The notes under the pieces were generated by a model. It worked only from the letters and a program-made list of their open reading frames with translations. It had not been told where the DNA came from and made no database searches. Below are positions 1,984 through 52,500 of a stretch of DNA of 64,000 nt, piece by piece. Both the position numbers and the translations under genes were made by a program. The stretch is from sequence record NC_023719.1. One strand, written 5' to 3'. Positions within the stretch are counted from its first letter, which is position 1; the number at the start of each line of letters is the position of its first letter.

Positions 1984-2304
1984 GTGTCTAGACTTAGAAA
2001 ATTAGCAAACTTATCAGAAGAGCTTGGAGAAGAATACTCAACAGCGAGCGGGAAAGTAACTCCTTATCATATATTGTTTAAAGATAATGGTGATGAAATT
2101 GCTTCTATGGATGTGGAAGCCGCTATACAATTTTGTTCTACAAAAATAGATGACTTAAATGAACAATATAAGAGTGACCCAAGTTACTATATGATTATTG
2201 ACCAAGAGAAAGAAGAGTTCTTGCAGTCATTGCGTGATTGTCAAAATGGTATGGATGTAGTATTTACTATTAAAGATTATTTATTAAGAGCAGATGAGAA
2301 GTAA
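1984..2304 (+). CDS. hypothetical protein with MSRLRKLAN leader
   Basis: ORF track; basic leader shared with 13196 and 48597. Confidence 0.75.
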   Translation: MSRLRKLANLSEELGEEYSTASGKVTPYHILFKDNGDEIASMDVEAAIQFCSTKIDDLNEQYKSDPSYYMIIDQEKEEFLQSLRDCQNGMDVVFTIKDYLLRADEK

Positions 2305-2416
2305 GTATTTAAAGTAGAGGGAAATCCTTTACTTTTTCATTTTTTTATGTATAATTCACTATATAGTTGTATATAATGATATTAAATAAGGATTATAAAA
2401 AAATGAAAACGGAGGA

Positions 2417-2839
2417 ATGAAGATTATGAAGATTAAGCCAATTCCATTTAATTACGGTTTGTTAGTAAAGGATTTTCCTGGGACAGAAGTAAAGGTACAA
2501 AGAAAAAATGTAGTAGTTGATAATGACATTATTGGTATGTGGGGAGAAAACATTGATGAAGAAAATCAAATTATGTTACTTACTAATATTTCAGTGAAAC
2601 GCGAGCATTCAAAAAATTCAAAGGAAAACTTAATTAGCCTTTGGGAATCAACTTTTAACCAATATGCAACAGATGAGCAGCCAGAAGAGATTTTAGCTCG
2701 TATTCAAGAAAGACAAGATAAAGAAGCAGAAAGAATGAAGAAGGCTGAGGAAGCTGCAAAGAAAGCAGAAGAAAAAGCTAAAGCGTTAAAAGATCAAATT
2801 GAAAGTAAAGAAAATAAAGCTAAAGAGCAAGTATCTTAA
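2417..2839 (+). CDS. hypothetical protein, C-terminal coiled coil
   Basis: GGAGG RBS; E/K/A-rich tail. Confidence 0.85.
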   Translation: MKIMKIKPIPFNYGLLVKDFPGTEVKVQRKNVVVDNDIIGMWGENIDEENQIMLLTNISVKREHSKNSKENLISLWESTFNQYATDEQPEEILARIQERQDKEAERMKKAEEAAKKAEEKAKALKDQIESKENKAKEQVS

Positions 2840-3087
2840 AGAAGGAGGGTTTCCCCTTCTTTTTTTTTGTTTTTAAAAACAGTTTACAATGTTATTTTAA
2901 TATGATATAATGTCTTTATAAGGTAACATACATAATCTAATAGTTATTTTACTGTTTAAACTTAGGGTTTTTATTTCTAATATTAAATTATAATTTTTAA
3001 AAATCCTTAAAAAACAGTTTACACGAAAAACTATTTATGGTATAATTAATTTATAAGGTAATAAATAAATTAAATATAGAGTAGGGA

Positions 3088-4584
3088 GTGTTGGTATTGG
3101 TATTAATTAAGGAAGAGGAAGTTTTATCCCCAGCAGCAGCTTATGAGTTTTTAACTACTCCTTTTAGTCATCAGGTAGAGAGTTTTAATTATGCTCTTGA
3201 GCATGATAAGTTTTTATTAGGTGACGAGCAAGGATTAGGGAAGACAAAGCAATCTATTGATATGGCAGTATATCGAAAGCAAACTGAAGGAATTAAGCAT
3301 TGTTTAATAGTTTGCGGAGTTAATAGTTCAAAGCGAAACTGGGTAAAAGAAATACACACTCACTCTAATGAGGATGCTTTAATACTTGGTACGAGAGTAG
3401 GGAAAAGAGGAAAACTATATATTGGTGGCTCAGTGGAAACAAGAATTGAGGATTTAGAGGAAGTATTACAAGGTGGAATAAGTCAGTATTTTTTAATTAC
3501 AAACGTAGAGACTTTGAGAAATAAAAAAGTACGTGAGTATTTAAATGACTTGACAGAAGCTGGTATGATTGGCTTTACTATTTTTGACGAAATTCATAGA
3601 GCGAAAAATGCTGAGAGTAAACAGGGAAAAGCTATTCATTGTATTAAATCAAAATACAAAGTAGCCCTTACGGGAACACCGCTTATGAATAACCCTATAG
3701 ATTTATTTAATGTCATGAAGTGGTTAGATGCTTATGAATTTGCATTTTATACTTTCCGTCATAGATATTGTGAAATGGGTGGTAAGGGTGGTCACGCTAT
3801 TGTAGGATACAAAAACCTAAAAGAGCTGCGTGATATGTTCGAAAAAATAATGCTAAGACGTAAGAAAAGTGATGTACTTGATTTACCAGATAAGATTCGC
3901 CAGCTTGAAAGAGTTCAAATGACTCCTAAGCAAGCAATGATTTATAAAGATGTACGTGAGTGTATTATGGCAAATATCCAACAAATAAAGTTGAGTCCTA
4001 ATCCGCTCGCTCAATTAATTCGATTAAGACAAGCTACTGGTTATACAGGTATTTTAAGTGATACTATTCAGGAGTCCGCAAAAATTAATCGTCTAAAAGA
4101 GATGTTGGAAGAAGTAGTTGCAAATGGTCATAAAGCTTTAGTGTTTTCTAACTGGACTTCTATGACTAATGTATTAAAAAGAGAATTAGAAGAGTACAAC
4201 CCAGCTGTGATTACTGGTGAAACAAAGGATGTTGACTTCGAGAAAGAAGTATTCCAAAATGACCCTGATTGTAAGATCGCTATTGGTACAATCGGAGTTA
4301 TGGGGACTGCTCACACATTAACAGAAGCCTCTTATGTTTTCTTTGTAGATAAGCCATGGAACTTCGCAAACGTCGAACAAGCAGAAGATAGAGCTCACCG
4401 TATTGGTACAACGAAGAATGTTACTTGTATTACGTTAGTTTGTGAGAATACTATTGATGAACGCATAGAAGAAATTATATTCAATAAAGCCGAGTTATCA
4501 CAAGGTTTAGTTGAAGGTGACAATGATGTAATTGAAAGACTTAATGTCGATACAGATTCATTAGTAGACCAACTACTTTCTTAA
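3088..4584 (+). CDS. SNF2-family (SF2) helicase/ATPase
   Basis: GDEQGLGKT Walker A, DEIH Walker B, LTGTP motif III, QAEDRAHRIG motif VI. Confidence 0.95.
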   Translation: MLVLVLIKEEEVLSPAAAYEFLTTPFSHQVESFNYALEHDKFLLGDEQGLGKTKQSIDMAVYRKQTEGIKHCLIVCGVNSSKRNWVKEIHTHSNEDALILGTRVGKRGKLYIGGSVETRIEDLEEVLQGGISQYFLITNVETLRNKKVREYLNDLTEAGMIGFTIFDEIHRAKNAESKQGKAIHCIKSKYKVALTGTPLMNNPIDLFNVMKWLDAYEFAFYTFRHRYCEMGGKGGHAIVGYKNLKELRDMFEKIMLRRKKSDVLDLPDKIRQLERVQMTPKQAMIYKDVRECIMANIQQIKLSPNPLAQLIRLRQATGYTGILSDTIQESAKINRLKEMLEEVVANGHKALVFSNWTSMTNVLKRELEEYNPAVITGETKDVDFEKEVFQNDPDCKIAIGTIGVMGTAHTLTEASYVFFVDKPWNFANVEQAEDRAHRIGTTKNVTCITLVCENTIDERIEEIIFNKAELSQGLVEGDNDVIERLNVDTDSLVDQLLS

Positions 4585-4649
4585 TGAAAGTAGTTTTTTG
4601 TTAAATTGACAACACTCTCTATATAGTATTATTATAGAGGTGTTGTTAA

Positions 4650-5282
4650 ATGAAAATATGCGGAATTTATTGTATAAAAAACATTAAAAACAATAAAGTA
4701 TATATTGGAAGTTCATCCAATATGAAATACAGATGGAGTAGACACAAAAGTGATCTAAATTGCAATAGACATGACAATAAACACTTGCAGAATTCGTGGA
4801 ATAAGTATGGTGAGAACAATTTTATATTTATTAGTTTAGAAGAAATTGAAGGAGATAAGTTGACAGAAAGAGAACAATTTTATATAGATAAATATAATTC
4901 TATGGATATTAAGTTTGGGTACAATAAAAGAGAAGCAAGTAATAATGGTTCTCCATCAGAAGAAACAAAAAGAAAGATGAGTATATCTGCTAGAAATAGA
5001 CCTAAGATTTCTGAAGAAACGAAAAAGAAGATAAGTGAAAACAATAAAAAAATGTGGGCATCCGGTAAAATGTCAAATGTAGTAAAAGCAAATAAAGAAA
5101 AACGAGTTTCGCAAGAAACGAGAGATAAAATAAGCAAGTCTTTAATGGGTAGAAAAAGACCACTAGAGGTAGGGAAAAAATCCGGAGATACCCAAAGAGG
5201 TAAAAAATTATCTGAGGAAACAAAGGCAAAAATGAGAGAAGCTCAAAAATTAAGAAGAATGAGAGAGAAAGGTTCTATTTGA
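4650..5282 (+). CDS. GIY-YIG homing endonuclease with NUMOD3-like repeats
   Basis: ICGIYCIKN...VYIGSS, E in EREQFYI, GYN motif; repeated SEETKxKMS/ISxS units. Confidence 0.93.
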   Translation: MKICGIYCIKNIKNNKVYIGSSSNMKYRWSRHKSDLNCNRHDNKHLQNSWNKYGENNFIFISLEEIEGDKLTEREQFYIDKYNSMDIKFGYNKREASNNGSPSEETKRKMSISARNRPKISEETKKKISENNKKMWASGKMSNVVKANKEKRVSQETRDKISKSLMGRKRPLEVGKKSGDTQRGKKLSEETKAKMREAQKLRRMREKGSI

Positions 5283-5327
5283 CCAACTACTAGCTTAACG
5301 GCTAGTAGTTTTTTATTGTCTATAAGT

Positions 5328-5410
5328 AATCACACAGAGGGATTAAATTTCTGGTTATATATTTATATTAAATCAGATTTTAAATCCCTCTGAGTGAATC
5401 TCAGTGATTT
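5328..5410. repeat. Dispersed inverted-repeat element (CAGAG family), copy 1
   Basis: AATCACACAGAGGGATTAAA ... TTTAAATCCCTCTGAGTGAAT flanking TATATATTTATAT. Confidence 0.75.
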
Positions 5411-5517
5411 AAAATTACTATATACATAGTTCTATAAATAAAAAATATTAGTTATTTACAAATGATGGGAATTATTATATAATAAATATATAAGGTTTTG
5501 TAGAAGGAGGAGTAGAA

Positions 5518-6756
5518 ATGAACATTCGAGAGCAAGCGGAAGAGTTAATGAAAGCTAAATTAAATGGTATGTTTCTTAATATTTTAAATGATTTCCCGCA
5601 ACTTTCTGATTCTCAAAAAGAAGAGTACCTTAATCAGTTTAAACATCGTTTCCCTTCTGATAAATTTAAAATAATATCACAAATGCAAAAAGCTGAAACA
5701 AATTTAGGGATACTTCGAGTAATCGAACGTCACTTGGGCAATGGTTCAAGTAGATTATCAGATGAAGCTGAAAGAAAAACTAAGCATCGACTTATGAGAG
5801 ATTTTGGTATAACACCAGATCAAACTGAAACTTTTGATGAATATTTGCGTTCAGTAATTGCTGATAACAAAAAAGAGCGTGTGTTTACATCAGAACCAGA
5901 AGCGATTGAAGAAGAAAAAAAAGTATCTTCTTTAGAGTCTTTAAATAAACTAATAGGGTTAGAAAAAGTAAAAGAACAAGTTCAAGGGTTAATAGCCCAC
6001 GAAGAGATCTCTAAATTAAGGGCTTCTCATGGATTAAAACATCAAAAGCATACATTACATATGATGTTTAAGGGTAACCCAGGAACTGGTAAAACAACAG
6101 TGGCGAGATTATTAGGTGAAATATTTAAAGAAATAGGAGTCTTAAGTACAGGGCATGTTGTTGAGATTGATAGAGCAAGCTTAGTATCTAGATATCAAGG
6201 TGACTTTGAAGAGCGAGTAACAGAGTTTGTAAATAAAGCTAAGGGTGGAATTTTATTTATTGATGAAATTTACTCATTATTTGACTCTGGTAAGGGTGAT
6301 GACCAATCTCAACGCGGTATACCAGTACTCCTTAAGTTAATAGAAGATCAAAGAGAAGATTTTATTTGTATTGGTGCAGGTTATACAAAAGAAGTTAATC
6401 AATTTTTAGAAAGTAACCCTGGCTTGAAATCTCGCTTCCCAGTTCATATTGAATTTGATGATTATACTGAAGAGCAGTTAATAGCAATAGCTACAAGCAT
6501 GCTTGGAAGTCAAGATTATAAAATGGATGATGAATTTATAGAGAAGTTTAAAAAGTGTGTCGAAGAAGAGAAGCAACATAAAGACTTCGGTAATGCACGT
6601 ACAGTAAGAAATATTATTGAATCATCTATTCGTCAGCAGTCTTTGCGTTTATTTAGTATTGATAAACAAGATTTAAATAAAGATAAGCTTTCAACAATTA
6701 TTGGCGGAGACTTTAAATATGAACCATTAAGACTTGAGGAAGAAGAAGCTCTATGA
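5518..6756 (+). CDS. SpoVK/CbbX-like AAA+ ATPase
   Basis: LIGLEKVK, HMMFKGNPGTGKTTVAR, GGILFIDEIYSL, NPGLKSRF, FGNARTVRN. Confidence 0.92.
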   Translation: MNIREQAEELMKAKLNGMFLNILNDFPQLSDSQKEEYLNQFKHRFPSDKFKIISQMQKAETNLGILRVIERHLGNGSSRLSDEAERKTKHRLMRDFGITPDQTETFDEYLRSVIADNKKERVFTSEPEAIEEEKKVSSLESLNKLIGLEKVKEQVQGLIAHEEISKLRASHGLKHQKHTLHMMFKGNPGTGKTTVARLLGEIFKEIGVLSTGHVVEIDRASLVSRYQGDFEERVTEFVNKAKGGILFIDEIYSLFDSGKGDDQSQRGIPVLLKLIEDQREDFICIGAGYTKEVNQFLESNPGLKSRFPVHIEFDDYTEEQLIAIATSMLGSQDYKMDDEFIEKFKKCVEEEKQHKDFGNARTVRNIIESSIRQQSLRLFSIDKQDLNKDKLSTIIGGDFKYEPLRLEEEEAL

Positions 6757-6858
6757 GTTTCTTTTTTTTAATTATTTTTAAAAAAATAGTTTACAAATGC
6801 AATATATTATGTTATAATTTATTTATAAGGTTAATCAATTATAAGGAGGCAATACAAT

Positions 6859-7203
6859 ATGAATGTTAAACAAATTGGTTTTTCAGAATTCAATGAGTCA
6901 ATGAAAGAAAGTAATGGAGATGGGATTGTATTATTAGGTGCTGGTGGACCTGCTGATGAATGGATTGATGGAGTGACTGGTATGTTACATGATAAAGGTA
7001 TTGTAAGTAGTGCGAATCCTGAAGAGGTTTGGGGAGAGGCATTTAAACTTTCAACATCCGGAGGTCGAACAGACTTAGCATTGACTTTCAATAGTAAAAT
7101 GGAATTTAAAATGGGAATGATGGCTATGTGGCGTATTGGATTTGGGGATTGTTCTTGGATAAGTGATTATGTAGTGAATTATCAAGATCAACATATATCT
7201 TAA
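6859..7203 (+). CDS. hypothetical protein
   Basis: Promoter, AAGGAGG RBS, terminator. Confidence 0.85.
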   Translation: MNVKQIGFSEFNESMKESNGDGIVLLGAGGPADEWIDGVTGMLHDKGIVSSANPEEVWGEAFKLSTSGGRTDLALTFNSKMEFKMGMMAMWRIGFGDCSWISDYVVNYQDQHIS

Positions 7204-7334
7204 GTCAATAAGGGCTGACAAGAAGTCAGCCTTTTTTTATACATATGTTTAAAATATTCATATCTTATTTATATAATATTTAATAAATTAAAATGAATTA
7301 GATCCTATTTCATAAGTGTGGAGGGTTTAGATAA

Positions 7335-7886
7335 ATGAAGATTAATAATGTAAGCGCACAAGATAAGAGGAAGTTTTTACGTATTATGTTGGATAAGTTA
7401 GATTTCAGTAAGCGCGATTTCGCATGGGTAAAAGATTTTTTATTACATCGACAGAATTATGCAAAAACACTAAAGAAAATACATTTTGTCGATAACCCTG
7501 AAGGGCTGAATAATATTATTATTTTATCTGACAAATATAAGTTGGGTGGAACTGCTTTGCATCTTGTGACAGATAATACTATCATCACTGATGTAGATCA
7601 AATTAATGAAATGATAAATGAAGCAACAGCTAGAAAGCGTTTTTATCTTTATGTCAATACTGATGAGAATTTAATGAAGTTTGAAAGTTTTATTAATATA
7701 GTGTTAGACAATAATAAAGCTAAAATGCCTGAAGAGTATGTTAAAGCAGCTGATGATATAATTGCGCAAGCAATGAAAGAAGCTGAGATACAGCAGTTAT
7801 CTAAAAAAATTGATGAAGCTCTTGATGATAATGATAAAGAATTATTTTATGATTATACTAATCAATTGAAAGAGTTGAGAAAATGA
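7335..7886 (+). CDS. YpiB/ReoY (UPF0302)-like protein with C-terminal IDEAL domain
   Basis: KRKFLRIML..KRDFAWVKDFL..IHFVDN resembles YpiB; IDEALDDNDKELF. Confidence 0.75.
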   Translation: MKINNVSAQDKRKFLRIMLDKLDFSKRDFAWVKDFLLHRQNYAKTLKKIHFVDNPEGLNNIIILSDKYKLGGTALHLVTDNTIITDVDQINEMINEATARKRFYLYVNTDENLMKFESFINIVLDNNKAKMPEEYVKAADDIIAQAMKEAEIQQLSKKIDEALDDNDKELFYDYTNQLKELRK

Positions 7887-8236
7887 ATCAAGAAGAATTA
7901 TCCAAGAGAGTTGATAGCATACGCAATTGTTTGGTAGATATGAAGCAGAGATTAAATAATAGGTTATACTATATAAATAACTTGGATCAAGCAAGTGATG
8001 AAATCGTTGTTTCAATTGTAAATGAGCAACTTGCGAATGGCATTACTACAGATGTATTAAAAAGTATTCTTTTTATATTGGAGACAAAAGAAAATGATTT
8101 AAATTTGTTATTAGATATACTTAATGAACGGAATGATGTAGAAGTAGATACAAGAGAAGGTTCTTTTATTAATGACATGTTTATTGATATTGAAGCTTAT
8201 TTAACAATGATTGAAAAAATGTTTACAAATGTTTAG
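7883..8236 (+). CDS. hypothetical protein
   Basis: Overlaps upstream stop (ATGA coupling). Confidence 0.8.
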   Translation: MNQEELSKRVDSIRNCLVDMKQRLNNRLYYINNLDQASDEIVVSIVNEQLANGITTDVLKSILFILETKENDLNLLLDILNERNDVEVDTREGSFINDMFIDIEAYLTMIEKMFTNV

Positions 8237-8289
8237 TAATGTGATATAATTAATTTATAAATAAAAATAAATTAATTGGAGTGGTAAAT

Positions 8290-13195: not shown

Positions 13196-13843
13196 ATGAA
13201 GAGATTAATTAAAAAAGGCAATATGTCATTTTTTCATGGAACTGATTTGTCTTCGCTTGTTGGTATTATATCGCGAGGTGTCTTAACTAATTCAAGTGTT
13301 AGTGGGCAAAAAAACCCAATAAGCGAAAATTTTGGAGATAATGTATTTCAAAACTGCGTTTATTTAGCGAGTTCATATGACGTTGCTAAAACTTACGCTA
13401 ATATTGATGATGAATTTAATGAAAGTTTTATTGATTATTTACCAGTGGTTTTAGAAATTGAAGTTGATTTTAATAATGCTAATGTATTTATTGATGAAGA
13501 CGCTTTTGATGGTTGGATACCTAATGATGAAGAATGGTATAACTTCATGCTCATGTGTAATGAGAAAGGCTTATTAACTAATTATAGTGTATCTACAGAA
13601 GATAATAAATATATCTTCCCAAGCCCAAATGATATTTATAAAAATAAAGATTTAGAAATAATGAAATTGTATCCTATTGAAAAAGGATTACAGCAATTTG
13701 GAAATATAGCTGTAGAAGATGATATACCAATTTCTCAAATAAAAAATATGACAATTTATTTAGATGAGTCTAGAAAACTCTCATCTTCTACTATAACTTT
13801 AGATGAAATCGAAAAATTAAAAAATGAATTGTTAAGCTTATAA
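13196..13843 (+). CDS. ADP-ribosyltransferase-fold protein (H-Y class)
   Basis: FFHGT, VYLASSYDVAKTYA, VVLEI; MKRLIKKG leader; start ATG 13196. Confidence 0.65.
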   Translation: MKRLIKKGNMSFFHGTDLSSLVGIISRGVLTNSSVSGQKNPISENFGDNVFQNCVYLASSYDVAKTYANIDDEFNESFIDYLPVVLEIEVDFNNANVFIDEDAFDGWIPNDEEWYNFMLMCNEKGLLTNYSVSTEDNKYIFPSPNDIYKNKDLEIMKLYPIEKGLQQFGNIAVEDDIPISQIKNMTIYLDESRKLSSSTITLDEIEKLKNELLSL

Positions 13844-13948: not shown

Positions 13949-14305
13949 ATGGATATTACAATGGAAAAGTTTAATAGAGATAAACATAACTTTCCTGGTG
14001 AAAATATCGAGCCAAGTCATGTCTTCTATGATGGGGATAAAATTGTTGGTAGAGCTAAGTTAGTTGTTTGTGAAACAGAAGTTTATATTGCTACTATAAC
14101 TGCAGAAGTAAAAGGCTTAGGGTATGGAAAAAAAATGATTGAACTTATTAAACAAAAATATAATAACTTTGATTTATTAACTGGTGATACTACCCCTAAA
14201 GCTAGAGGATTTTGGGAGAAAATGGGTGCAATTATAGACGAGACTTATGAAGATTTTTTCTATATTCAAATTGATCCAGATAAAAATATTAAGCCTATTT
14301 TTTAA
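13949..14305 (+). CDS. GNAT-family acetyltransferase
   Basis: VYIATITAEVKGLGYGKKMIE (motif A); KARGFWEKMG. Confidence 0.8.
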   Translation: MDITMEKFNRDKHNFPGENIEPSHVFYDGDKIVGRAKLVVCETEVYIATITAEVKGLGYGKKMIELIKQKYNNFDLLTGDTTPKARGFWEKMGAIIDETYEDFFYIQIDPDKNIKPIF

Positions 14306-22039: not shown

Positions 22040-22558
22040 ATGGAATTTACTATTGAAGTAGAAAATGTTGAACAATTAGGGTTAAATAAAACTAAAAGGA
22101 ATTATTTAATATTTGCTTTTATAAATAATGAAAAAGTTGGATATTTACGTTTTGAAGATCAAACAAATTGTGACTTATCTTTTTATGGTGGAGAAGATAA
22201 AGTAGTAAGTAGAATTATTTATTTAGCTATGGTAAATGTTCACCCTAATCACAAACAAAAAGGTATAGGTATGGAATTATATAAAGAGTTTGGTAAGTAT
22301 TACAAGCAAAACTTTAATGGTGTACCTGTACTTCACTTGTTTAATAATTCAATTGCGGATTATATGTTCCGTAAGTCTGTTGCAAGTGATGATATTCCAA
22401 TAGAAGCATATAATGAAGAGTATTTTTATAAAGATGATATGAGTGAGGAAAACAATATTAATTGGAGAAACTTAAGAGAAAAACTTCCAAAACAATTCCA
22501 AGGAAGCGCAATAGATTGGGATTATGAAGCTCTTTATGGAGAAGAAGTAGAGGGGTAA
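22040..22558 (+). CDS. GNAT-family acetyltransferase, homolog of the repeats in 50887
   Basis: VGYLRF, VNVHPNHKQKGIGMELYKEFG, FNNSIADYMFRK. Confidence 0.8.
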   Translation: MEFTIEVENVEQLGLNKTKRNYLIFAFINNEKVGYLRFEDQTNCDLSFYGGEDKVVSRIIYLAMVNVHPNHKQKGIGMELYKEFGKYYKQNFNGVPVLHLFNNSIADYMFRKSVASDDIPIEAYNEEYFYKDDMSEENNINWRNLREKLPKQFQGSAIDWDYEALYGEEVEG

Positions 22559-37180: not shown

Positions 37181-37186
37181 AGGAGA

Positions 37187-37582
37187 GTGTTTTATATGTT
37201 AGCTATTGAAAGTTTTGCAGGGTTAAAAGGGATAATGGAAAAAGACTCTGGTGAAAGTTTAGATATGTATGAACATTGGGATCGTTTATTTATCAATGGT
37301 CAAGAAACAGAATTGATGTTACGATTCTTCAATCATACAAGTACATTAGTAATTGCTCGTATCAAAGTAAAAAATCGACGTACTGGTGTAGCCACTTCTA
37401 TTCTTGATTGGCTGAAAGAATACGCTAAACAAAACAAAATCGCTAACATTGCACTAGAAAGTACAACTACTCATGAGATCAATGCGTTTGCTGAAAAGCA
37501 TGGTTTTGAGAAAATCGAACAACAAGGGATGTACTATGAAGGAGTATTTTTTGGCAACTGGAATTTATCCTTAAATAATTGA
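37187..37582 (+). CDS. GNAT-family acetyltransferase
   Basis: VIARIKVKNRRTGVATSILDWL; NAFAEKHGF. Confidence 0.8.
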   Translation: MFYMLAIESFAGLKGIMEKDSGESLDMYEHWDRLFINGQETELMLRFFNHTSTLVIARIKVKNRRTGVATSILDWLKEYAKQNKIANIALESTTTHEINAFAEKHGFEKIEQQGMYYEGVFFGNWNLSLNN

Positions 37583-38065: not shown

Positions 38066-38118
38066 ATTTAAAAAATATGTACTTTCTTTCTATAATTAAA
38101 ATAGAAAGGAGGGAAACC

Positions 38119-39318
38119 ATGAAACGTTCTAAATTAATTAGGATTTCTAAAAATAATAGTAAATATAAATTAATAGATTCTTTATCTTTAAAATCTAAAA
38201 ACTTGTATAATTACGCTAATTATTTAATTAGACAAGAGTTTATTTTAAATGGGAAATGGATAAGATATAATGAATTAAATAAAAGATTAAAAGAAGAAAT
38301 AGTATATAAAGAATTACCAATCCAAACATCTCAACAAACACTCATGTTATTGGATAAAAATTGGAAATCTTACTTTAACTCGATAAAAGATTGGTCTAAA
38401 AATAAAAGTAAATATTCAGGCAAACCAAAACTACCTAAGTATAAAAAGAAAGATGGGAGATTTAATGTAGTTTTTACTAATCAACAAGCAAAACATAAAA
38501 ATGGGATTATTAAAATTTGTCCAGCAAGTTTGGATCTTATTTTTAATATCAATATTGAAAACAAAATAAAACAAATTCAAATAATACCTAAAAATAATTT
38601 TTATCAATTGGAAATAATCTATGAAATTGATAAAAAAGAAGTGGAATTAAATGACGAATTATATTGTGGGATTGATTTAGGAATTAATAATCTTATAACT
38701 TTAACAGATAACCTGCATAATAATCCAATTGTTATCAATGGTAAAATTATTAAGTCTATAAATCAATATTACAATAAGAAAAGAGCCGAAATACAATCTA
38801 CTTTACTAATAAAAAATAAAAAAACTTGGTCAAATAAGCTAACTCAATTAACTGAAAAAAGAAATAATAAAATAAAAGATTATATGCATAAGAGTTCTAG
38901 ATATATAATTAATTATTGCTTATCTAATAAGATAAAAACAATAGTGATTGGATATAATCAAAATTGGAAAGAAAGACTTATTGTCTCAAAACAACAAAAT
39001 CAAAATTTCTTTCAAATTCCTTATTTAACTTTAATTGAAATGATACAATATAAAGCTGAAGAATATGATATAGATGTTATACTAACTGAAGAATCTTATA
39101 CTTCCAAAGCTAGTTTTTTAGATTTAGATGAGATGGAAAAAGATTTTAAATTTAATGGAGAAAGAATAAAAAGAGGATTGTATAAGACTAATAATGGTAT
39201 TTTAATAAATGCTGATGTAAACGGTTCTTATAATATAATTAGAAAAGTAGCTCCAAATGTTTTTACAGATGGAGTAGAGGGTGTAAAGTTACATCCATTG
39301 AAAATTAATTTTTCATAA
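38119..39318 (+). mobile_element. tnpB: solo TnpB (IS200/IS605 family, IS1341-like) RNA-guided nuclease
   Basis: GIDLGINN (RuvC-I), IVIGYN, TEESYTSK, NADVNGSYNI (RuvC-III), GVEGVKLHP tail; no tnpA nearby; ATG 38119 after AAGGAGG. Confidence 0.9.
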
Positions 39319-44569: not shown

Positions 44570-44835
44570 AGTCTTCATATAGAGGATTCTAGAAAGAGTT
44601 TGATTTTGGACTGGGAGGCGATAATACCCCAGCTAAAGTAATATATAAAAAGGCACTTTAATGAGTGTCTTTTTTTTATTTATTTAGTGTATCTACATAG
44701 AGGTGGGCCCATTGTTATTAATTTAATTACTTATTTTATATTTTAAATAGACATAGTATGTCTGTACTAGTGTTTAAAAAACAAAATGTTTAAAACAATT
44801 AATTTGTTTTTTGCATGAAGGGAGGGAGTAATAGT

Positions 44836-47800
44836 ATGTCGTTTTCACGTAATGATAAGTTTAATGCTGATCGTAACTTTGTTAGAGTGAGATTTGGTAA
44901 GGGTAAAGTTTTATTAGAATCAGAATTAAACGAAATGCAGAAGATTCTTACACAACAAATTAGAAATAGCAACAAAATTATTTTTGAAGATGGTTTTGTA
45001 GGTATTCAACATGTAAAGTATGAAAATGCTATATTTAGATTTTTAGTTGATTACTACATTCAAGATGGATTAATTTATCCATTGGGAACTGAAATGGTAC
45101 TGAATATATCTAATACTAAAACAGAATATGATATTTATTTTGAAGCGCAAGAACTTACTGTAAGTTATGCTGATAAAATACCTAACAAAGGTAATTTAAA
45201 CATGAACGAATTAATTTCCATTTCTGATATTTTAGATGTAGAAGTAGAGATAGAAGATAAAGAAACATCTAGAAGAGTTCAATGGCAATATAAGCTAGTG
45301 TTGGTTGCTAAAGGTACAAATTATACTGGTAATGGTAAATTAATTGCTAATATTTCTTCTAATGGTGTACTTACTACGATAGTTGAAGAAAGTAAAAACG
45401 CGATCCAAACAATTTATGATGACCATCTTGTGCCTTTACAAAATGGATATGAAAACTTAAGAGAAAAAGTTGATTCTCAAGGTATCACTGTAACTTCTTT
45501 ACAAGATAAAGTAAACGTAATAGAAACAACAAGTGTTAGATCTGTGAATAATAGTTTCCCAAATGTTGATGGCGACATTACTATTGGTATTCCAACTAAC
45601 ACGAGTGAATTAAATAATGATAGTGAATTTACTACATCTAGTTTTGTTGATACAAAAGTTGAGGAAGTAAAGGATTTTGTAAAAACTGAAATAGACGCAA
45701 AAAATTATATCATTAATCCGAATAAATGGAAAGGAGCAAGCGTTTCTGTATTTGGAACTTACACATTTGATTCAATTTATCAATCCGTAAAGGATTTGAA
45801 TGTCAATATTTTGACAATACCCGTAAATGTTGAAGCAGTTAGTTTAACTGACTCTGAGCCGAAAATTAATCAAGCTCAATTTACTAAAGTGAAAGATGTT
45901 GTTGCTCGTTTATTAGAAAAAGGAATAAGAGTTATTCTAGAACCATTCCCATTAATTGGAGAAGGTAAATTGGTTGAAACAGAATGGAATCCATCAGATC
46001 CAAACTTATGGTTTACTCATTGGGGAAATGCATTAAAAGAGCTAGCTCAATATTCACAAGAAAATAATTTAGAAGCATTATATATAGCGAGTAACTTTAC
46101 GCACATGGAACAACACATAACTAAATGGGAATCTTTAATCTCAGATGTCAGAGCGATATATAATGGTAAGATATTGTATAGAACTAGCTGGTGGATTACA
46201 GCTTCTTGGGCTCCAGAAACAGTTACAGCGTATCAAGCTAAACTAAACAATCCAATTTATGGTTTAGTGGATGTTATTTCTATTGCTGCATACTTTGAAT
46301 TAACTGATAATTCAGATGCTAGTGTTGATGATTTAATAGCGAATATCTATAGTGTTTCTTTATTTGGAAGAGGACAAAATGTATTCCAAGAAATAAAGAA
46401 TTTTAATGATAAATGGAATAAGCCTATCTTCTTTGGTGAATTAGGTATTGCGCCATATAAAACTGCTTATTCTCAGCCTTGGCAATTCCAATTCGATGGA
46501 GCGTTATATGATGAGAAGATCCAAAGTAGATGGTTCGATGCTTTCTATCAAGTATTCCATAAGGAAGATTGGTTCAAAGGGTTCTCTATTTTCGCAGTAG
46601 ATGATGAAACTTCTGAATATAAAATAAGACAAAACAACGTCTCTCAATTAGCTCTATATGATTTTAATAAAAACAATGAAAATCCATTTAAAAATTATAT
46701 AGATAGTGAGTTAAAGAGAAAAGTTGATAATTCTCAATTAGAAGAATATAAGAAAAAGTTAGATGACGCTGAGTACACTATTAGCAAACTTGGATATGTA
46801 CCACCAAGTAGAAAAGGAAGGCTTGTTACAGATTTCAGTAAGTTTGTATTATGGTATGGAATAGTTGCGCAAGATACTGAACATGTAATAGTTGGTCCTT
46901 CTTCTGTGAAAGTCACAACAGATACTGCTAATACTACAGCAGCTGCTCGTTTACGTAGTACTAAATATAATTTCTCTAAAGCTAAAAATATGACAATTAG
47001 ATTTTATGTAGAAGATATAAATAAACTATCTAATATTGAGTTGAGATTATCTTCAGTAGATAATATGACTAGCTATTTATCTTGGAAAACCACAAAATGG
47101 AAAGTTGTAAATGGATGGAACGAAGTAATGATTCCACTTTCTAAACTCACTGCTACAGGCGGAGAGCTAATAACTAATACTATTACAACAATTCAAATTA
47201 GCGTAACTGGAGATCATACTTCTGTAATATTTGATAGTATTTTTGTTAATAGGAAAAGTAATGCTAATGTAATGTTCCAATTTGACGATGGTTGGTTATC
47301 AGTTTATACTAATGCATTCCCAGAAATGCGCAGTAGAGGAATGGTCGGTAATGTTGGTGTTATTAGTAACTCAGTTGGCACTAATAACTATATTACTTTA
47401 AATCAGTTTAAAGAATTGCAAAATTATGGTTGGGAAATGTTTAATCACACTGTAACACACAGGGATTTATCTCTATTAACAGAAGAAGAAATAAGAACGG
47501 AGCTTAATGGTTGTAGAGATTGGTTAATAGCGAATGGATTTAAAACTGCTGCTAATTTTGTAGCTTATCCTTATGGTAATTCAAACGATGCAGTATTTGA
47601 AGTAATGAAAGATTTTGAATTTGGAAGAACAGTGAGAGAAGAATATGAAGTGCTTCCGCCTATTAATCCACATCGTTTAAAGTGTTTTACATTTGATAAT
47701 GCTATAGACGTAAGTGTTGCTACAAATGCGATAGATCACGCTATAGAATGTGGTGACACAGTAATTTTCTTATTCCACAAAATAGAAGCAAACACTAATA

Positions 47801-47913
47801 CAGAAACAATTAATTACCCAATAGATAAATTTATACAAATTTTAGATTACATCTATGATAAATTAGATAAAATTGATGTAATCACTTGTAGTGAATTTGC
47901 AAATATTCGTTAA
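44836..47913 (+). CDS. virion/tail-associated multi-domain carbohydrate enzyme: DUF4815-like anchor + GH113-like TIM barrel + beta-sandwich + CE4 polysaccharide deacetylase
   Basis: FVRVRFGKGKVLLESELNEMQ; ILEPFP...DVISIAAYF...PIFFGELG; FQFDDG...WEMFNHTVTH...AYPYG...IFLFH. Confidence 0.75.
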   Translation: MSFSRNDKFNADRNFVRVRFGKGKVLLESELNEMQKILTQQIRNSNKIIFEDGFVGIQHVKYENAIFRFLVDYYIQDGLIYPLGTEMVLNISNTKTEYDIYFEAQELTVSYADKIPNKGNLNMNELISISDILDVEVEIEDKETSRRVQWQYKLVLVAKGTNYTGNGKLIANISSNGVLTTIVEESKNAIQTIYDDHLVPLQNGYENLREKVDSQGITVTSLQDKVNVIETTSVRSVNNSFPNVDGDITIGIPTNTSELNNDSEFTTSSFVDTKVEEVKDFVKTEIDAKNYIINPNKWKGASVSVFGTYTFDSIYQSVKDLNVNILTIPVNVEAVSLTDSEPKINQAQFTKVKDVVARLLEKGIRVILEPFPLIGEGKLVETEWNPSDPNLWFTHWGNALKELAQYSQENNLEALYIASNFTHMEQHITKWESLISDVRAIYNGKILYRTSWWITASWAPETVTAYQAKLNNPIYGLVDVISIAAYFELTDNSDASVDDLIANIYSVSLFGRGQNVFQEIKNFNDKWNKPIFFGELGIAPYKTAYSQPWQFQFDGALYDEKIQSRWFDAFYQVFHKEDWFKGFSIFAVDDETSEYKIRQNNVSQLALYDFNKNNENPFKNYIDSELKRKVDNSQLEEYKKKLDDAEYTISKLGYVPPSRKGRLVTDFSKFVLWYGIVAQDTEHVIVGPSSVKVTTDTANTTAAARLRSTKYNFSKAKNMTIRFYVEDINKLSNIELRLSSVDNMTSYLSWKTTKWKVVNGWNEVMIPLSKLTATGGELITNTITTIQISVTGDHTSVIFDSIFVNRKSNANVMFQFDDGWLSVYTNAFPEMRSRGMVGNVGVISNSVGTNNYITLNQFKELQNYGWEMFNHTVTHRDLSLLTEEEIRTELNGCRDWLIANGFKTAANFVAYPYGNSNDAVFEVMKDFEFGRTVREEYEVLPPINPHRLKCFTFDNAIDVSVATNAIDHAIECGDTVIFLFHKIEANTNTETINYPIDKFIQILDYIYDKLDKIDVITCSEFANIR

Positions 47914-48103
47914 GTAATTTTTAGAGAAGATATTCATTTATCTTCTCTTTTTTTATTTTACAATCATACAATATGATTATTATTTAATAACAGAGTTTAA
48001 TTCTGAGTGAAAATAAATGAATATGAATGATAAATATAATGATGGTAAAATATTTTAATTTCTTTTAACTTTTACATAAAATGAAAATAAAAAGGGGATA
48101 AAA

Positions 48104-48523
48104 ATGACATTAGAAAATCCAAAGAAGAAAAGGGTAATAGAGATATTAAATAACTTTATCGTAATAGATTCTTTAGCAGCGACTGATAAAACTTTTACAT
48201 TAGAAGTATACGAAAGATTAGCAAAAGATTGTTACTTATGGGAAATTAGATTTGTTGAAAATGCTCAAGAGGCTATAAGTTTTTCTCACAATTTAATAAA
48301 TATACGATTAAAGAATGGTAGAATAGAAGTTACATCTAATTTGTTTCTTGTAAAAAGTATTTTTAAGTATGAATTTCTTGGTTATAAAAAATCAGAAGTT
48401 GGAGATGTGCCGTTTAATAGGTTTTTATATGAAGTTACATTAGATAGTATAGAAGAGCTGTCTTATCTATTAGAAAGAGTCGTTTCAAAAGCAAGGTTAG
48501 AATTTGTATTAACGAAATTTTAA
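48104..48523 (+). CDS. hypothetical protein
   Basis: GGGG RBS. Confidence 0.75.
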   Translation: MTLENPKKKRVIEILNNFIVIDSLAATDKTFTLEVYERLAKDCYLWEIRFVENAQEAISFSHNLINIRLKNGRIEVTSNLFLVKSIFKYEFLGYKKSEVGDVPFNRFLYEVTLDSIEELSYLLERVVSKARLEFVLTKF

Positions 48524-48596
48524 AAAATGTGAATAGAATTAACTAAAAAGCCTATTTAAAAATAAAATTAGGTTTCAATAAAAAGGAGATAACAGT

Positions 48597-49124
48597 ATGA
48601 AAAGATTAAGAAAGACTGCGAATGTTGATATTGATATGTTCTTAGATTCATTATTAAATTTTAATCAATATTCTCAAGATGATATAGATAATTTAGTTAA
48701 AAATAATCCAGACTGTTTATATAATGGAGAAGGTTATAGAGTTTTTTTGTTTGAAATTGAAGATTTTAAACAAGCTAGAAAAGAGAGTCAAAAAGAAGGT
48801 TTATGGGGAACTATTGACAGATTGATTAGAGTTGATGATTCATTTCAATCTTTTTCTAAAAGTCTAAATGGGATAAATAATGTTACAGATAACTTTGAAC
48901 ATTCTGGTGAACATGGGGAAGTGAAAATTGTCATTAAATTTATTATAGATGATGGATTAGATATTTCAAAACTAATAGAGAAATTTAAGAATGAATTATC
49001 AGAAGAAACTGTCATGAGTTATGAAACCTATGCTAGCGAAGAAGAAGTTTTAGCTAGATTCAATTCGGAAGATTTTGAAATAGCAAATATGGAGGAATTT
49101 TCTAAACTTTATTATGAATTATAA
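48597..49124 (+). CDS. ADP-ribosyltransferase-fold protein (R-S-E class)
   Basis: LYNGEGYRV, FQSFSKS, SEEEVL; MKRLRKTAN leader. Confidence 0.65.
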   Translation: MKRLRKTANVDIDMFLDSLLNFNQYSQDDIDNLVKNNPDCLYNGEGYRVFLFEIEDFKQARKESQKEGLWGTIDRLIRVDDSFQSFSKSLNGINNVTDNFEHSGEHGEVKIVIKFIIDDGLDISKLIEKFKNELSEETVMSYETYASEEEVLARFNSEDFEIANMEEFSKLYYEL

Positions 49125-49181
49125 TGGAAATATGAATAGAATGCTATAAAAAACTTATTAAAGTAATAGATATAGCAGGAG

Positions 49182-49442
49182 GTGCAATTAAGCACAATGG
49201 ATTATGACCCCAGGGTGATTGAAGTTAACATCCAGTTGAGTGATTTACATCAACAAATGCAGCAACAAGAGGAATTAATTAAAAAGTCACATCTAATAAA
49301 GAAATTTATAGAATGGCGGAAGTTAAAGAATTTGCGAAATGAATATAAGAAGAAAAAAGAATTTAAGAAAACACTGGTAGCAAATATAAAAAGATCCTCA
49401 CAAAGAAGAAAAAGAAAAAGAAATGCTGCAAGATATAATTAA
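49182..49442 (+). CDS. basic coiled-coil hypothetical protein
   Basis: AGGAGG just upstream; start uncertain (ATG 49197). Confidence 0.65.
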   Translation: MQLSTMDYDPRVIEVNIQLSDLHQQMQQQEELIKKSHLIKKFIEWRKLKNLRNEYKKKKEFKKTLVANIKRSSQRRKRKRNAARYN

Positions 49443-49601
49443 AACTATCTATCTATTAGATAGTTTTTTTATTTATAGTAAAATGTAACCAGAAATCAAA
49501 AATCACATAAAATGTATATTGTATAAGAGATGTAGAAAAAGAAAGAATAATACAAAAGAATAGATTAAATAATAATCTTTCTATATTATAAGGAGAGGAT
49601 T

Positions 49602-49970
49602 GTGATGAATCTAATAGAGATAAACGATTATTACGAATACGAGATAGAAATTAGTTTAAAGAGAACATCGGGCCAGATAATAGAAAATACTGTAATAGTA
49701 GAAGTTCGGCTGTATGAAAAGAATACTCTAGGCGGGGAAAAGGCTGGCGGCGGAACGACGACACGATCTCTCATTAATACATTCAAAGAAGAAGTAAAAC
49801 GACCTAATATACTACAATTTCTATTAGGACTATCTTGGCAGGATAGAATAAACTCCGCGCGAGATTGTTTAAAGAATAAAGCAATTTATAATGCGGCAAT
49901 AAGATGGCATCAGGAGATATTCCCGAAAGAAATAAGACATTTATTAAGTGAAGAAGATAGAATTAGATAA
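49602..49970 (+). CDS. hypothetical protein
   Basis: AGGAGAGG RBS; runs into the repeat array. Confidence 0.6.
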   Translation: MMNLIEINDYYEYEIEISLKRTSGQIIENTVIVEVRLYEKNTLGGEKAGGGTTTRSLINTFKEEVKRPNILQFLLGLSWQDRINSARDCLKNKAIYNAAIRWHQEIFPKEIRHLLSEEDRIR

Positions 49971-50396
49971 TAGATAGAATAGAACAATGATTAATTGAAA
50001 CTATCTAATAGATAGAATAAAACATTTAGATAATAGATAGAAAGAACATTTAATTAAAAATATCTAATAGATAGAATATTATAGATAATACTAATAGATA
50101 GACCAAGCTACTCCTTAAATAGATAGAATAAAGGATTCATACAATCTATCTAATATTACAGTTAGGAGGACATACGACATTTTAATCTTTTATCTAATAG
50201 ATAGAGCTATAGAAATTACTAATAGATAGAATAGATAGTTGTCGTATTAGTTCTATTAACTGGTAGCTGAGCTATTAGCTTTGCATGAATAGATAGATTA
50301 CTCTAATAGATAGAATAAAGAATCTAATAGAATAGATAGAATAAAACTTTTTTATCTATTCATGCTATAATCATTTTGCTCATTTTATCTATTAGA
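49968..50396. repeat. iteron-like array of (TATCT)AATAGATAGAAT
   Basis: 12 direct ATAGATAG copies plus inverted TATCTATT copies at ~50353 and ~50386. Confidence 0.85.
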
Positions 50397-50437
50397 TTTA
50401 TGAATCAATAAACTTTTAGCAAAGGAGCGTTATGTAA

Positions 50438-50554
50438 TTGGAAAATAGTACTACAATAGTCGTATTGCTTTGCGTATTATGTACCGTTGAAATGATAAAC
50501 GTAACAAACTTTAGTTTATTTAAGCTTTATCTAAAAAACAAATTCTCAAAGTAA
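50438..50554 (+). CDS. 38-aa hydrophobic peptide (not in track)
   Basis: AAGGAG RBS, TTG start; STTIVVLLCVLCTVEMINVTNFSLFKLYLKNKFSK. Confidence 0.5.
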   Translation: MENSTTIVVLLCVLCTVEMINVTNFSLFKLYLKNKFSK

Positions 50555-50886
50555 TCATACCACGAGCGACAGCCGTGGTTTTTTACTGCCCCGCAGGGGC
50601 AGCTACGCGAGTGGAAAATGATTGAAAAGTGGATGATTGAGAGAGTAGGAAGGAGAGTTGTAATGAAGAGTAGGATTTTAGATTGGTAGGTCTGAGTACC
50701 CCTTCTAAAAACATGATGTCTTAAGACCAAATGGGCCAAGCAGGGTTTAGATCGCGAGGGAAAAGAAGAATAAAATAGAAAAATTGTTCTAAAAAGTTAA
50801 GACGATAGTATTTTACATAGAAAGCACTGTATATATTTATAGTAAGAATAGAAATTACAAAGTAAGAGGTAGGGAAGAGGAGTATT

Positions 50887-52500
50887 ATGGCTAAAGAGTA
50901 CATTTATCAAAATGATGACAATAATGAAGAATACAAGATAGATTGGGATAAGATTTCAATTTATGTTCAAGATACTATTAGAGATCTTAACACTAATAAT
51001 GCTAAATATGTGACTGATCATGAGATTTATTGTGATTATTATGGAGAGCAAATTGGATATCTTCATTTTTCAGAATTTCATGATGTAAATGCTAAAGATA
51101 TTCATCCATCTTTACCAAGCAAGTATTACAATAAATTACTTTATATTAACAACGTATTAGTAAACTTAGATTTTCGTGGATGGGGAATTGGAACCCAACT
51201 ATATAAAGAGTTTGGTGAAATTTATTCAAGGCAATTTAAAGATTGGCCATTAGCTCAAGTATTTGTAAACCCTATAGCGGAATATTCCTTTAGAAGAGCT
51301 ATAGAAAAGGGATCTATACCTAAAAGCGCTTATGTGGAAGAACTAATAGCTAGGGATTACAATGAAGAAGAAAAACAAAAAGCAAAAAATTTGTTTGATT
51401 GGTTACCGAAAGATGAACAAAAAGACTTTAAACAAAAGATGAAAAATATAAAAAAAGAAAAATCCGCAACAATAAACAAAGGGGAATTGAATAGAATGAT
51501 GAAAGATATGAGGCGAAAGTTAGATAAAGCATTAGATTTACGTAAAATAAAAGCTAATACAATTGTTGAAGCAATAGATGCTTCTGAAGCAGCTGATCTA
51601 AGAGCTGGTATCACATTTGATTATCAAAGTAATGTTGGTATTGATCAAAGTCAAACAGAAGAAACAGAAACTTTTCAAATAGTAGCTAATTTAGGTGGCC
51701 AACAAGCTGGTTATATGCTATTTACTGCTTATTTAGAAAGTCAAAAGATAACATTAGATATTTTACTAACTAATGGTAAATACAAAGATGTTGGTTTTGA
51801 AATGATGTTACTTGCAGAATTTAATACTATTTACGTTGATAGATTTAGTGGATGGCCATTAGCAAGACACTTTACTGATCCGTTTGCAGAACTGAAATTC
51901 AGACAAGCGCTAGAAGTTGGTTGGCTATCTAGAGATATGCTTAATGAAGAATATATCACTAGAGATTATAGTGATACTGACCAAAAGTTCTGGGATAACA
52001 CTTTGAAAAATGTTATAAATGATGAGAGAGTTCGTGGGGCTCATGTAATTAGAAAAGATTTAAGAAAAACAGCAACAAATATTACTATTGCTCCAATAGA
52101 AATTGAAAGAAATCAACTAAACAGTAGAGAACATAAGATAAATATCAGAAGAGATGGAGAACTTCTAGCAGAATTAAAATATACAGTTTATGCTGAAAAA
52201 GAAATAATATATGTTAATTACATTGAAGTTTTTGAACAATATAGACAAAATGGTTTAGCATCTTTACTGTACGAAGAGTTTTCAAAAGATTACAATGCCG
52301 ATTATTCAGGTTGGAAAATGACTAGAGTATTTATTAATCCTGTAGCTGAGTATGCATTTCAAAAGGCTGTTTCTGAAGGATTGTTCCCAGCAGAAACTCT
52401 AAATAGTATTAGAAGAGATTACAATCATGAAGATGAAGAGCTTTGGTATAATGAGTTAGAACCAAAATTGAAAGATTTAAGAAAACAAAAAGCTGTTTAA
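50887..52500 (+). CDS. protein with three tandem GNAT-like domains
   Basis: Three repeats of GY/AE...V..(F/Y)R..G...LY.EF...Y...F.GW.....F.(N/D)P.AE..F..A...G; homologous to 22040. Confidence 0.8.
   Translation: MAKEYIYQNDDNNEEYKIDWDKISIYVQDTIRDLNTNNAKYVTDHEIYCDYYGEQIGYLHFSEFHDVNAKDIHPSLPSKYYNKLLYINNVLVNLDFRGWGIGTQLYKEFGEIYSRQFKDWPLAQVFVNPIAEYSFRRAIEKGSIPKSAYVEELIARDYNEEEKQKAKNLFDWLPKDEQKDFKQKMKNIKKEKSATINKGELNRMMKDMRRKLDKALDLRKIKANTIVEAIDASEAADLRAGITFDYQSNVGIDQSQTEETETFQIVANLGGQQAGYMLFTAYLESQKITLDILLTNGKYKDVGFEMMLLAEFNTIYVDRFSGWPLARHFTDPFAELKFRQALEVGWLSRDMLNEEYITRDYSDTDQKFWDNTLKNVINDERVRGAHVIRKDLRKTATNITIAPIEIERNQLNSREHKINIRRDGELLAELKYTVYAEKEIIYVNYIEVFEQYRQNGLASLLYEEFSKDYNADYSGWKMTRVFINPVAEYAFQKAVSEGLFPAETLNSIRRDYNHEDEELWYNELEPKLKDLRKQKAV

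Follow-up and report, generated by a model that had tools for sequence, protein, structure and literature searches.

In bacteriophage T4, a short N-terminal peptide, the capsid-targeting sequence (CTS), is present on IPI-III and on Alt, an ADP-ribosyltransferase (ART) that is injected, and is removed by the prohead protease gp21. In Staphylococcus phage 80alpha, the N-terminal leaders of the capsid and scaffold proteins are of the ribosomal L27 type and are cut by the host Prp protease. Here we describe a short basic leader peptide in Bacillus (Lysinibacillus) phage G that can be compared with these systems. The window analysed is a stretch of 64,000 nucleotides that is 100% identical to positions 433514-497513 of JN638751 and represents the right end of the 497.5-kb genome. 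An initial annotation of the window had noted a (K/D)LRKxA motif in four proteins, gp592, gp610, gp675 and gp678, and had proposed that it marks unrelated modifying enzymes for packaging and proteolytic release. All six motif occurrences were found again at the same positions when the open reading frames (ORFs) were translated. The N-terminal leader is a real, non-random signal that is selected at the peptide level. The reading that we favour on grounds of context and analogy, and to which we give an even chance, is that it acts as a head-targeting and processing tag like the T4 CTS.

ORF calling over the whole phage G genome, with heuristic start sites based on ribosome binding sites (RBS), yielded 662 ORFs. 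The pattern [KRST]RL[IVLMFTRK][KRS][KRQTLA] is present at 29 ORF N-termini compared to 0.22 expected, a frequency far above background. When 125,876 internal positions of the phage G ORFs were scanned with the same pattern, six matches were found, which corresponds to an approximately 130-fold N-terminal enrichment over the internal rate. MKRL starts 18 ORFs (0.4-1.1 expected), while the runner-up tripeptide at positions 2-4 occurs three times. In a six-frame scan that did not depend on start assignment, 31 of 48 core matches were located at most seven codons downstream of a start preceded by an RBS. Additional carriers beyond the first ORF calls are gp9, which reads (M)TRLKKIKQ with its GenBank start, gp10 and an ORF at genome position 401818. 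Altogether, about 33 phage G proteins (approximately 5% of the ORFs) carry the leader. The motif is thus indeed common to unrelated modifying enzymes, and it is spread far more widely than the three N-terminal cases from which it had been recognised.

The leader logo (n = 52 aligned sequences from phage G and its relatives) reads M46 K43 R52 L52 I30 K40 K39 S21/A19, and conservation ends at position 8. The Arg-Leu pair of the canonical leader is invariant (52/52). The core can be written as [K/S]-R-L-[I/hydrophobic]-[K/R]-K-[S/A], and its usual form is M-K-R-L-I-K-K-S/A at the extreme N-terminus. In some carriers the core is set one to five residues inward, as in gp20 (MSKKISRLKKTAL) and gp10 (MKKSRLKKVS), which shows that the free Met is not part of the signal. 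Synonymous codon usage in the leader is similar to that of the genome (Arg AGA 62% versus 63%, Leu TTA 55% versus 60%, Lys AAA 70% versus 78%). Since codon choice in the leader follows that of the genome as a whole, it is the peptide that is under selection, and a DNA-level repeat or a bias at translation starts could be ruled out. A secretion signal of the Sec or Tat type was likewise ruled out, because no hydrophobic segment follows the tag in any of the 29 carriers: a 15-residue Kyte-Doolittle window above 1.6 in residues 6-45 is found in 0 of 29 carriers, but in 58 of the 633 other ORFs.

To look at conservation, IMG/VR was scanned with a degenerate DNA pattern for MKRLIKK[AS]. The matches were mostly ordinary signal peptides, in which the same heptapeptide forms the n-region in unrelated phages, plus repeated matches in several large low-GC contigs; a looser DNA pattern without the ATG gave matches no better than the control. 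In three of the contigs, G001 (175 kb), G002 (110 kb) and G003 (100 kb), MKRLxKK starts six, eight and seven ORFs, respectively, and the reversed-pattern control none. In the unrelated low-GC comparison contig G004 (416 kb), four such ORF starts were found versus three in the reversed-pattern control. G002 and G003 encode the major capsid protein (MCP) of phage G with 86-89% identity and its protease with 58-59% identity, whereas G004 encodes neither. The tag is kept on orthologs that are only 30-55% identical elsewhere in their sequence. It is therefore clade-wide, being found in phage G and in its uncultured megaphage relatives.

After trimming of the leader, the carriers fall into approximately 20 groups without BLAST relationship and with diverse Pfam domains, which rules out one expanded paralogous family. 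Eleven of 13 ART-like proteins have the leader. According to Pfam and atlas matches, the PARP/DarT-like ART carriers are gp53, g70929, g81748, g163172, g178671, gp336 (weak PARP match in Pfam), g401818 and gp610, and the R-S-E ART carriers are gp38, gp347 and gp675. Further carriers are the single-domain GNAT-like g388147 with the leader MKRLIKAS, the ParB_N protein g207449, the WYL protein g214437, gp334, which is nucleoside-deoxyribosyltransferase-like (Nuc_deoxyri_tr2) and is annotated as a NUDIX hydrolase, the SLOG protein gp345 and the ferritin-like gp346. In the window, the 106-aa protein gp592 (1984-2304) has the leader (V/M)SRLRKLA (1984..2007, plus strand), which in context reads (V/M)SRLRKLAN; a paralog at genome position 382868 begins with MSRLKKLAV. 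Paralogs without leader also exist (gp628, g402421 and g420403). Of these, gp628 (22040..22558, plus strand) is a single-domain paralog of the gp678 repeat, which shows that the leader is an add-on located outside of the fold.

Two of the carriers in the window had been assigned as ARTs, and both assignments hold, that of gp610 with less certainty, based on family motifs, identity to gp336 and atlas neighbours. The gene for gp610 (13196-13843, 215 aa) starts with the leader MKRLIKKG (13196..13219, plus strand; MKRLIKKGN in context), which directly abuts the FFHGT strand. The motifs FFHGT, YLASSY and VVLEIE are present, and no Pfam match was found above the cut-off. gp610 is 36% identical to gp336, and its atlas neighbours are DUF3990, DUF4433/DarT, PARP and Arr, with template modelling (TM) scores of 0.52-0.57. 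We tentatively place it in the H-Y-E/DarT/PARP-like clade of the ART superfamily, which is the least certain of the domain calls. Small GNAT genes are found near ART genes at two positions of the window, gp611 (13949-14305) and gp660 (37187-37582); gp611 directly follows gp610, which suggests paired modifiers.

gp675 (48597-49124, 175 aa) begins with MKRLRKTA (48597..48620, plus strand; MKRLRKTAN in context) and is an ART of the R-S-E clade. It has no Pfam match; its atlas neighbours, which are structure and feature matches, are DRAT, NarE, ADPrib_exo_Tox and MuF-ART fusions. Close homologs were found neither by word search nor in IMG/VR, while an exhaustive profile search did yield homologs, and conservation was calculated from 52 cluster representatives. 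The family conserves C-x-[YF]-x-G-x-x-Y-R, S-F-[SA]-x-S and [EQ]-x-E, and the top three conserved columns are R48 (98%), S85 (96%) and E150 (100%). The leader residues R3 and L4 are 92% conserved, which is on par with the catalytic R, S and E. Pairs of sequences are on average 67% identical in the leader versus 25% in the body of the protein. By a strict test, 60 of the 116 profile matches carry the tag, and many near-variants are present besides; the shortest and most distant homologs have no leader. In the ARTs, the catalytic strand begins at approximately residue 12.

The fourth protein, gp678 (50887..52500, plus strand, 537 aa), consists of three tandem GNAT-like repeats. Repeat 1 matches Acetyltransf_1 with 32 bits (cut-off 20.7) and repeat 3 matches Acetyltransf_CG with 24 bits, below the cut-off of 30. 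The repeats align with the single-domain paralogs g388147, which bears a leader, and gp628, which does not. Together with the score above the cut-off in repeat 1, this supports the assignment as a triple GNAT-like protein. The motifs DLRKIKAN (aa 217-224), DLRKTATN (aa 391-398) and DLRKQKAV (aa 530-537) are located at the two junctions and at the C-terminus, and DLRK stands at the start of each GNAT-like repeat. Junction 1 (MRRKLDKALDLRKIKAN, aa 208-224; 51508..51558, plus strand) appears as a degenerate leader that has kept its Met, followed by the DLRK of repeat 2. At junction 2 (HVIRKDLRKTATN, aa 386-398; 52042..52080, plus strand), the spacing to the domain core equals the leader-to-core spacing in g388147; the homologs P0130 and P0132 have NVIRKDLRKLAN at this site. 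The junctions read MRRKLDKA-LDLRKIKAN and HVIRK-DLRKTATN, and MRRKLDKA and HVIRK look like degenerate leader remnants ahead of the D-L-R motif.

DLRK is not a genome-wide motif: only eight occurrences were found versus 2.4 expected, and these are clustered, with three in gp678 and two in gp8. The single (K/D)LRKxA pattern that had been proposed combines two motifs, the genome-wide N-terminal leader with its Arg-Leu pair and the Asp-Leu-Arg-Lys of gp678. gp8 is encoded in the head module (genome 9085-9477) and contains a tandem RKDLRKDLRKTS. D-L-R also opens the domain in homologs with a separate N-terminal leader, as in P0127 (MNRLRKIAFEAAE-IDLRNLVV). The gp17 and gp13 orthologs of G003 begin with MKDLRTKK and MQDLRKKA in place of the MKRLIKK and MKRLISK of phage G and G002, and thus D-L-R-K can stand for R-L-I-K in orthologous leaders. 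The DLRK junction motif of gp678 is plausibly a variant or a remnant of the tag, with the equivalence being ambiguous.

Canonical leaders are located exactly at domain boundaries in independent fusions (P0017, P0038, P0070, P0123, P0124, P0127 and P0128). P0017 reads ...KLIMAKRLIRKAEVNY... at the junction, followed by the ART domain, and P0038 has three modules with a junction leader. P0123, P0124, P0127 and P0128 are gp678 homologs with junction leaders; in P0124 the order is GNAT, RLVKKANSLLLYHGT / FRLVKKANSLLLYHGT, ART, GNAT. A 294-aa ORF of G001 starts with MKRLIKKA... and contains ...TSRLKKIAFGG ahead of a domain that is paralogous to a leader-bearing upstream gene. Internal translation starts at the junction leaders were considered and rejected: the P0017 and G001 junctions have no RBS, and a weak AAAGGGG is present before M204 of gp678. 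The lack of an RBS ahead of the internal copies indicates true fusions. Canonical leaders at the junctions of homologous multi-domain proteins are what a polyprotein or cleavage-site model predicts. That gp678 itself is a polyprotein which is cleaved, as the initial annotation had proposed, is plausible, although we regard it as doubtful. In the relatives, a leader-bearing domain family of approximately 130 aa with the signature ...R[DN]xA[IV]xY[IV][ND]G...H is expanded and is repeatedly fused upstream of the R-S-E ART (L137:449-1333 in G001, L146:1815-3226, and P0017/P0038/P0070).

Leader-like sequences are also present at C-termini. The tail of gp678, KDLRKQKAV-COOH (aa 529-537; 52471..52497, plus strand), is kept as ...DLRK(K/Q)K..V-COOH in P0129, P0130, P0132 and P0133. 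gp5, a protein with a LysM domain (genome 4754-5851), starts with MSRIKKIN and ends with ...NTRLKKK-COOH, a leader-like sequence at the extreme C-terminus. The conserved DLRK tail together with the TRLKKK end of gp5 suggests that the signal may be independent of position, as would be expected of a docking peptide more than of a mere cleavage site.

A role in head assembly or loading is suggested above all by the context of the head module. Six carriers are small proteins encoded there: gp9, gp10, gp12 and gp13 upstream of the portal gene gp14, with gp13 immediately so, gp17 between the portal and gp19, and gp20 directly after gp19. The acidic coiled-coil protein gp21, which is scaffold-like, contains a degenerate copy (ARKKLARAEQQ; compare MKRLVKAEQQ in gp53). 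The same head-module arrangement with leaders was found in six relatives (G002, G003 and four more), and G002 and G003 have one more carrier after the MCP gene. Around more distant gp19 relatives (32-39% identity) no such leaders were seen, and in phage G itself MCP gp27, the portal, the protease and the tail genes have no leader.

Two enzymes are candidates for processing of the tag. gp19 (genome 16840-17742; orthologs L138:8903-9826 and L139:8841-9758) is the predicted prohead protease, since it matches PHROG 18299 'head maturation protease' with an E-value of 2.6e-19; the motifs FVDHQN and DTSMGC are conserved. Sequence searches of the PDB and Pfam with gp19 gave no match, and an AlphaFold2 model from three sequences was unusable (predicted local distance difference test score, pLDDT, 31). 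gp19 also contains a zinc-ribbon-like Cys-rich insertion (CRC...CSIC...FCDH) and an invariant C-terminal tail, ...LNNLPW[ST], which could be a capsid-docking motif of its own. The second candidate, gp2 (genome 1980-3212), is encoded directly after the terminase gene gp1 and is an M16 zinc peptidase of the insulinase/mitochondrial processing peptidase (MPP) family with HFIEH as HxxEH zinc site (Peptidase_M16 1.7e-33, M16_C 4.2e-37). This peptidase is not discussed in the 2025 phage G paper. Orthologs with 45-68% identity were found in four of the four leader-clade relatives covered (G002, G003, G006 and G007) and none in the distant leaderless relatives G008-G010; G004 has an M16 homolog with 32% identity and no leader enrichment. 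The search for giant ORFs or portal fusions as Rosetta stones in the distant relatives revealed just inteins, homing-endonuclease domains and zinc ribbons. The portals of the distant gp19 relatives (L153:535-5259 and L154:1526-5023) are 1165-1574 aa in length and harbour LAGLIDADG and DUF559/REase domains, which are inteins or homing endonucleases, and a family of 56-aa ORFs ahead of the protease begins with M-x-x-F-K-K-[IVL]-S-E-L.

For a head-targeting tag, we propose the following course, in which head loading, cleavage, the receptor and the identity of the protease are the inferred parts. The tag would dock its carrier on a component of the assembling procapsid, for which the scaffold-like gp21, gp20, the portal and the inner face of the HK97-fold shell are candidates. 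Docking would load about 30 small proteins into the head, among them ARTs, GNAT, NAD/nucleotide-signal enzymes, ParB_N-like, ferritin-like and head-module proteins, and these would enter the next host together with the DNA. The tag might be clipped by a phage protease, either gp19 or the M16 peptidase gp2 beside the terminase. Carriers fused into one ORF, including gp678 and its homologs, would keep the tag at their junctions, be loaded as one unit and possibly be cut into the separate domains.

Several observations weigh against this proposal. MCP gp27 is reportedly processed and has no leader-like motif, which indicates that the tag is not a general gp19 site. The logo has no conserved Glu, unlike the cleavage sites of T4 or phiKZ, which end in Glu. 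The DLRK of gp678 may in part belong to the domain itself. The carriers are dispersed over the genome without a common promoter, as no k-mer upstream of them was left after correction for multiple testing. The search profile for the gp675 family contained the leader, so that the search is biased towards leader-bearing homologs. The detection of the carrier gp346 in the phage G particle proteome (PMC12484599) speaks for head loading, but it is weak evidence because this proteome is permissive, with 55% of the nucleic-acid-metabolism ORFs detected (PMC12484599).

A more far-reaching version of the head-targeting proposal would be a presequence-like viral sorting system. The eight-residue tag, at N-termini, junctions and perhaps C-termini, would route approximately 5% of the proteome, with at least 11 ARTs and NAD- or nucleotide-signal enzymes, into the head, and the M16 peptidase, the prohead protease or both would remove the tag and divide fusions such as gp678 into injected effectors. 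Taken as a whole, this scheme appears unlikely.

Alternatively, the tag could be a pro-sequence for gp2 that is clipped in the cytoplasm, where it would mature or activate toxic enzymes and split fusions, with no head loading involved. The two M16 domains and the zinc site of gp2, as well as its co-occurrence with the leader in the clade and absence from G008-G010, are in line with this, and K-R-L|I-K-K-S matches the MPP consensus xRx|(F/L/I)xx(S/T/G) (PMC3117770). As a pattern fit only, the logo gives R in 52/52, a hydrophobic residue at R+2 in about 42/52, and S21, A19 and T1 at R+5, meaning that half of the leaders have Ala instead of S/T/G. Polyproteins, too, are substrates of MPP, which cuts them at presequence-like sites inside the chain (PMC8734313), to which the junction copies would correspond. 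However, MPP presequences are amphipathic helices of 15-50 residues and the tag has eight, of which a cut after R-L would take off just four. The co-occurrence may merely mirror clade membership, with G004 having an M16 peptidase without leader enrichment, and the six tagged head-module proteins would be left unexplained. We therefore hold a purely cytoplasmic pro-sequence to be decidedly unlikely; a part of this explanation is compatible with head targeting, as gp2 could process packaged cargo.

ClpX recognises short basic terminal motifs, for example the C-terminal RRKKAI of MuA. The C-termini ...KDLRKQKAV of gp678 and ...TRLKKK of gp5 resemble such MuA-type motifs, and the tag could accordingly be a signal for the phage ClpX (with ClpP, gp257-258), acting as a degron by which toxic effectors and scaffold-like proteins are removed at a set time or as an unfoldase handle for assembly. 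Both ClpX and ClpP are encoded by phage G and were detected in particle preparations (PMC12484599), and Iyer et al. (PMC7824862) propose that the phage ClpX (AEO93517.1) may translocate unfolded proteins or aid virion assembly. On the other hand, known N-terminal ClpX motifs are unlike the leader, internal junction copies are poorly explained as degrons, and the strong conservation on small late head-module proteins points to assembly rather than disposal, which makes a ClpX signal very unlikely.

Quite improbable, too, is docking on another hub, such as DNA or the nucleoid, acidic lipids of the membrane, or the coupling protein of the type IV secretion-like module of the phage. The tag has a charge of +4 to +5 in seven residues and seems usable at N-terminal, internal and C-terminal positions, as expected for a binding peptide, and TraC/TraD-like genes are present in phage G (PMC12484599). 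The invariance of Arg-Leu and the occurrence of S/A at position 8 nevertheless indicate a specific protein receptor and not an interaction by charge alone. Signals for type IV secretion are typically located at the C-terminus, gp155-156 showed no link by context, and the head-module context favours the procapsid. That the leaders have no shared function and reflect A-rich codon bias after start codons or one expanded gene family is effectively refuted: although Lys is the commonest second residue (118/662 ORFs), several carriers are paralogous (5 + 2 PARP-like proteins, 3 R-S-E ARTs) and the heptapeptide serves elsewhere in signal peptides, this is countered by the N-terminal enrichment, the freely varying synonymous codons, the number of unrelated families, the leader being far better conserved than the body, the retention at fusion junctions and the absence from G004.

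If the tag is a loading signal, it marks the likely injected arsenal, approximately 30 proteins, of the only cultivated megaphage, and would account for the arrival of free-standing ARTs in the next host without fusion to a head protein. It would also provide a portable eight-residue handle with which foreign proteins could be packaged into a very large capsid, the largest known head of a cultured phage. Together, the tag copies at junctions and the M16 peptidase encoded nearby make it conceivable that a tailed phage processes polyproteins, in parallel to mitochondrial presequences. Whatever its function, a peptide that matches catalytic residues in conservation and spans about 20 families is a sign that the clade shares a recognition step not described before. 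PMC9503650 counts at least ten ARTs in phage G, with gp334 (AEO93593.1) being listed, and argues that ARTs and Nudix proteins are often packaged via MuF or portal fusions or linkage to head genes. The leader is not mentioned in the passages of PMC9503650 and PMC7824862 considered here, the word 'leader' occurring 0 times in those of PMC9503650, and the motif strings gave no match in the searchable literature. Two other genes of the window may be noted. gp662 (window 38077-39318) encodes a transposase of the IS605 OrfB/TnpB type (OrfB_IS605 and a Cas12f1-like TNB domain). gp673 (window 44815-47913, 1032 aa) has a DUF4815-like N-terminus, a GH113/GH5 glycosidase and polysaccharide deacetylase domains, and was reported in particles as a tail-fibre-associated mannanase (PMC12484599).

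Among the known systems, the phage G tag can be compared with the T4 CTS. Both are short N-terminal peptides common to unrelated proteins of one phage, an ART is found on both lists of carriers (the injected Alt in T4), the carriers, which in T4 are proteins of the scaffold core and other internal proteins, are partly encoded in the head module, and a prohead protease is encoded there as well, T4 gp21 and phage G gp19, the latter assigned by PHROG family only. The CTS is acidic and ends with L/I-x-E, whereas the phage G tag is basic (K-R-L-I-K-K-S/A); about six carriers in T4 compare with about 30 in phage G; and the tag is, unlike the CTS, also found internally at domain junctions and possibly at C-termini. 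The cleavage site of phiKZ is S/A/G-x-E, in contrast to the leader with its lack of a conserved Glu. The 80alpha leader (…LQFFA|S) has two known phage substrates, while phage G has another motif, an untagged MCP and dozens of tagged enzymes. Encapsulin cargo-loading peptides are likewise short and terminal, and they bring unrelated cargo, with ferritin-like proteins as the classical case, into a shell of the HK97 fold. Phage G has an HK97-fold MCP (gp27, 282 aa, without delta domain) and the leader-bearing ferritin-like gp346, but the peptide sequence is unrelated and phage G is a virus and not a nanocompartment.

MPP presequences and the tag share a basic N-terminus, an Arg two residues before a hydrophobic one and a small or hydroxyl residue three positions further (PMC3117770). 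Both systems have an M16 peptidase with HxxEH and tag-like sequences at fusion junctions (Arg5,6 in the case of MPP; PMC8734313), whereas the amphipathic MPP presequence is linked to membrane translocation and the tag is not. In other phages, the 'polyvalent' head proteins described by Iyer, Aravind and co-workers have ART, GNAT or Nudix domains fused to MuF or portal proteins, and enzymes of the ART, GNAT, Nudix and SLOG classes are predicted to travel in the head and to be injected (PMC9503650, PMC7824862). The enzyme classes are the same as in phage G, where the enzymes are free-standing or fused to each other and bear an eight-residue tag in place of a covalent head-protein domain. The fold of gp675 matches the MuF-ART fusions of these other phages.

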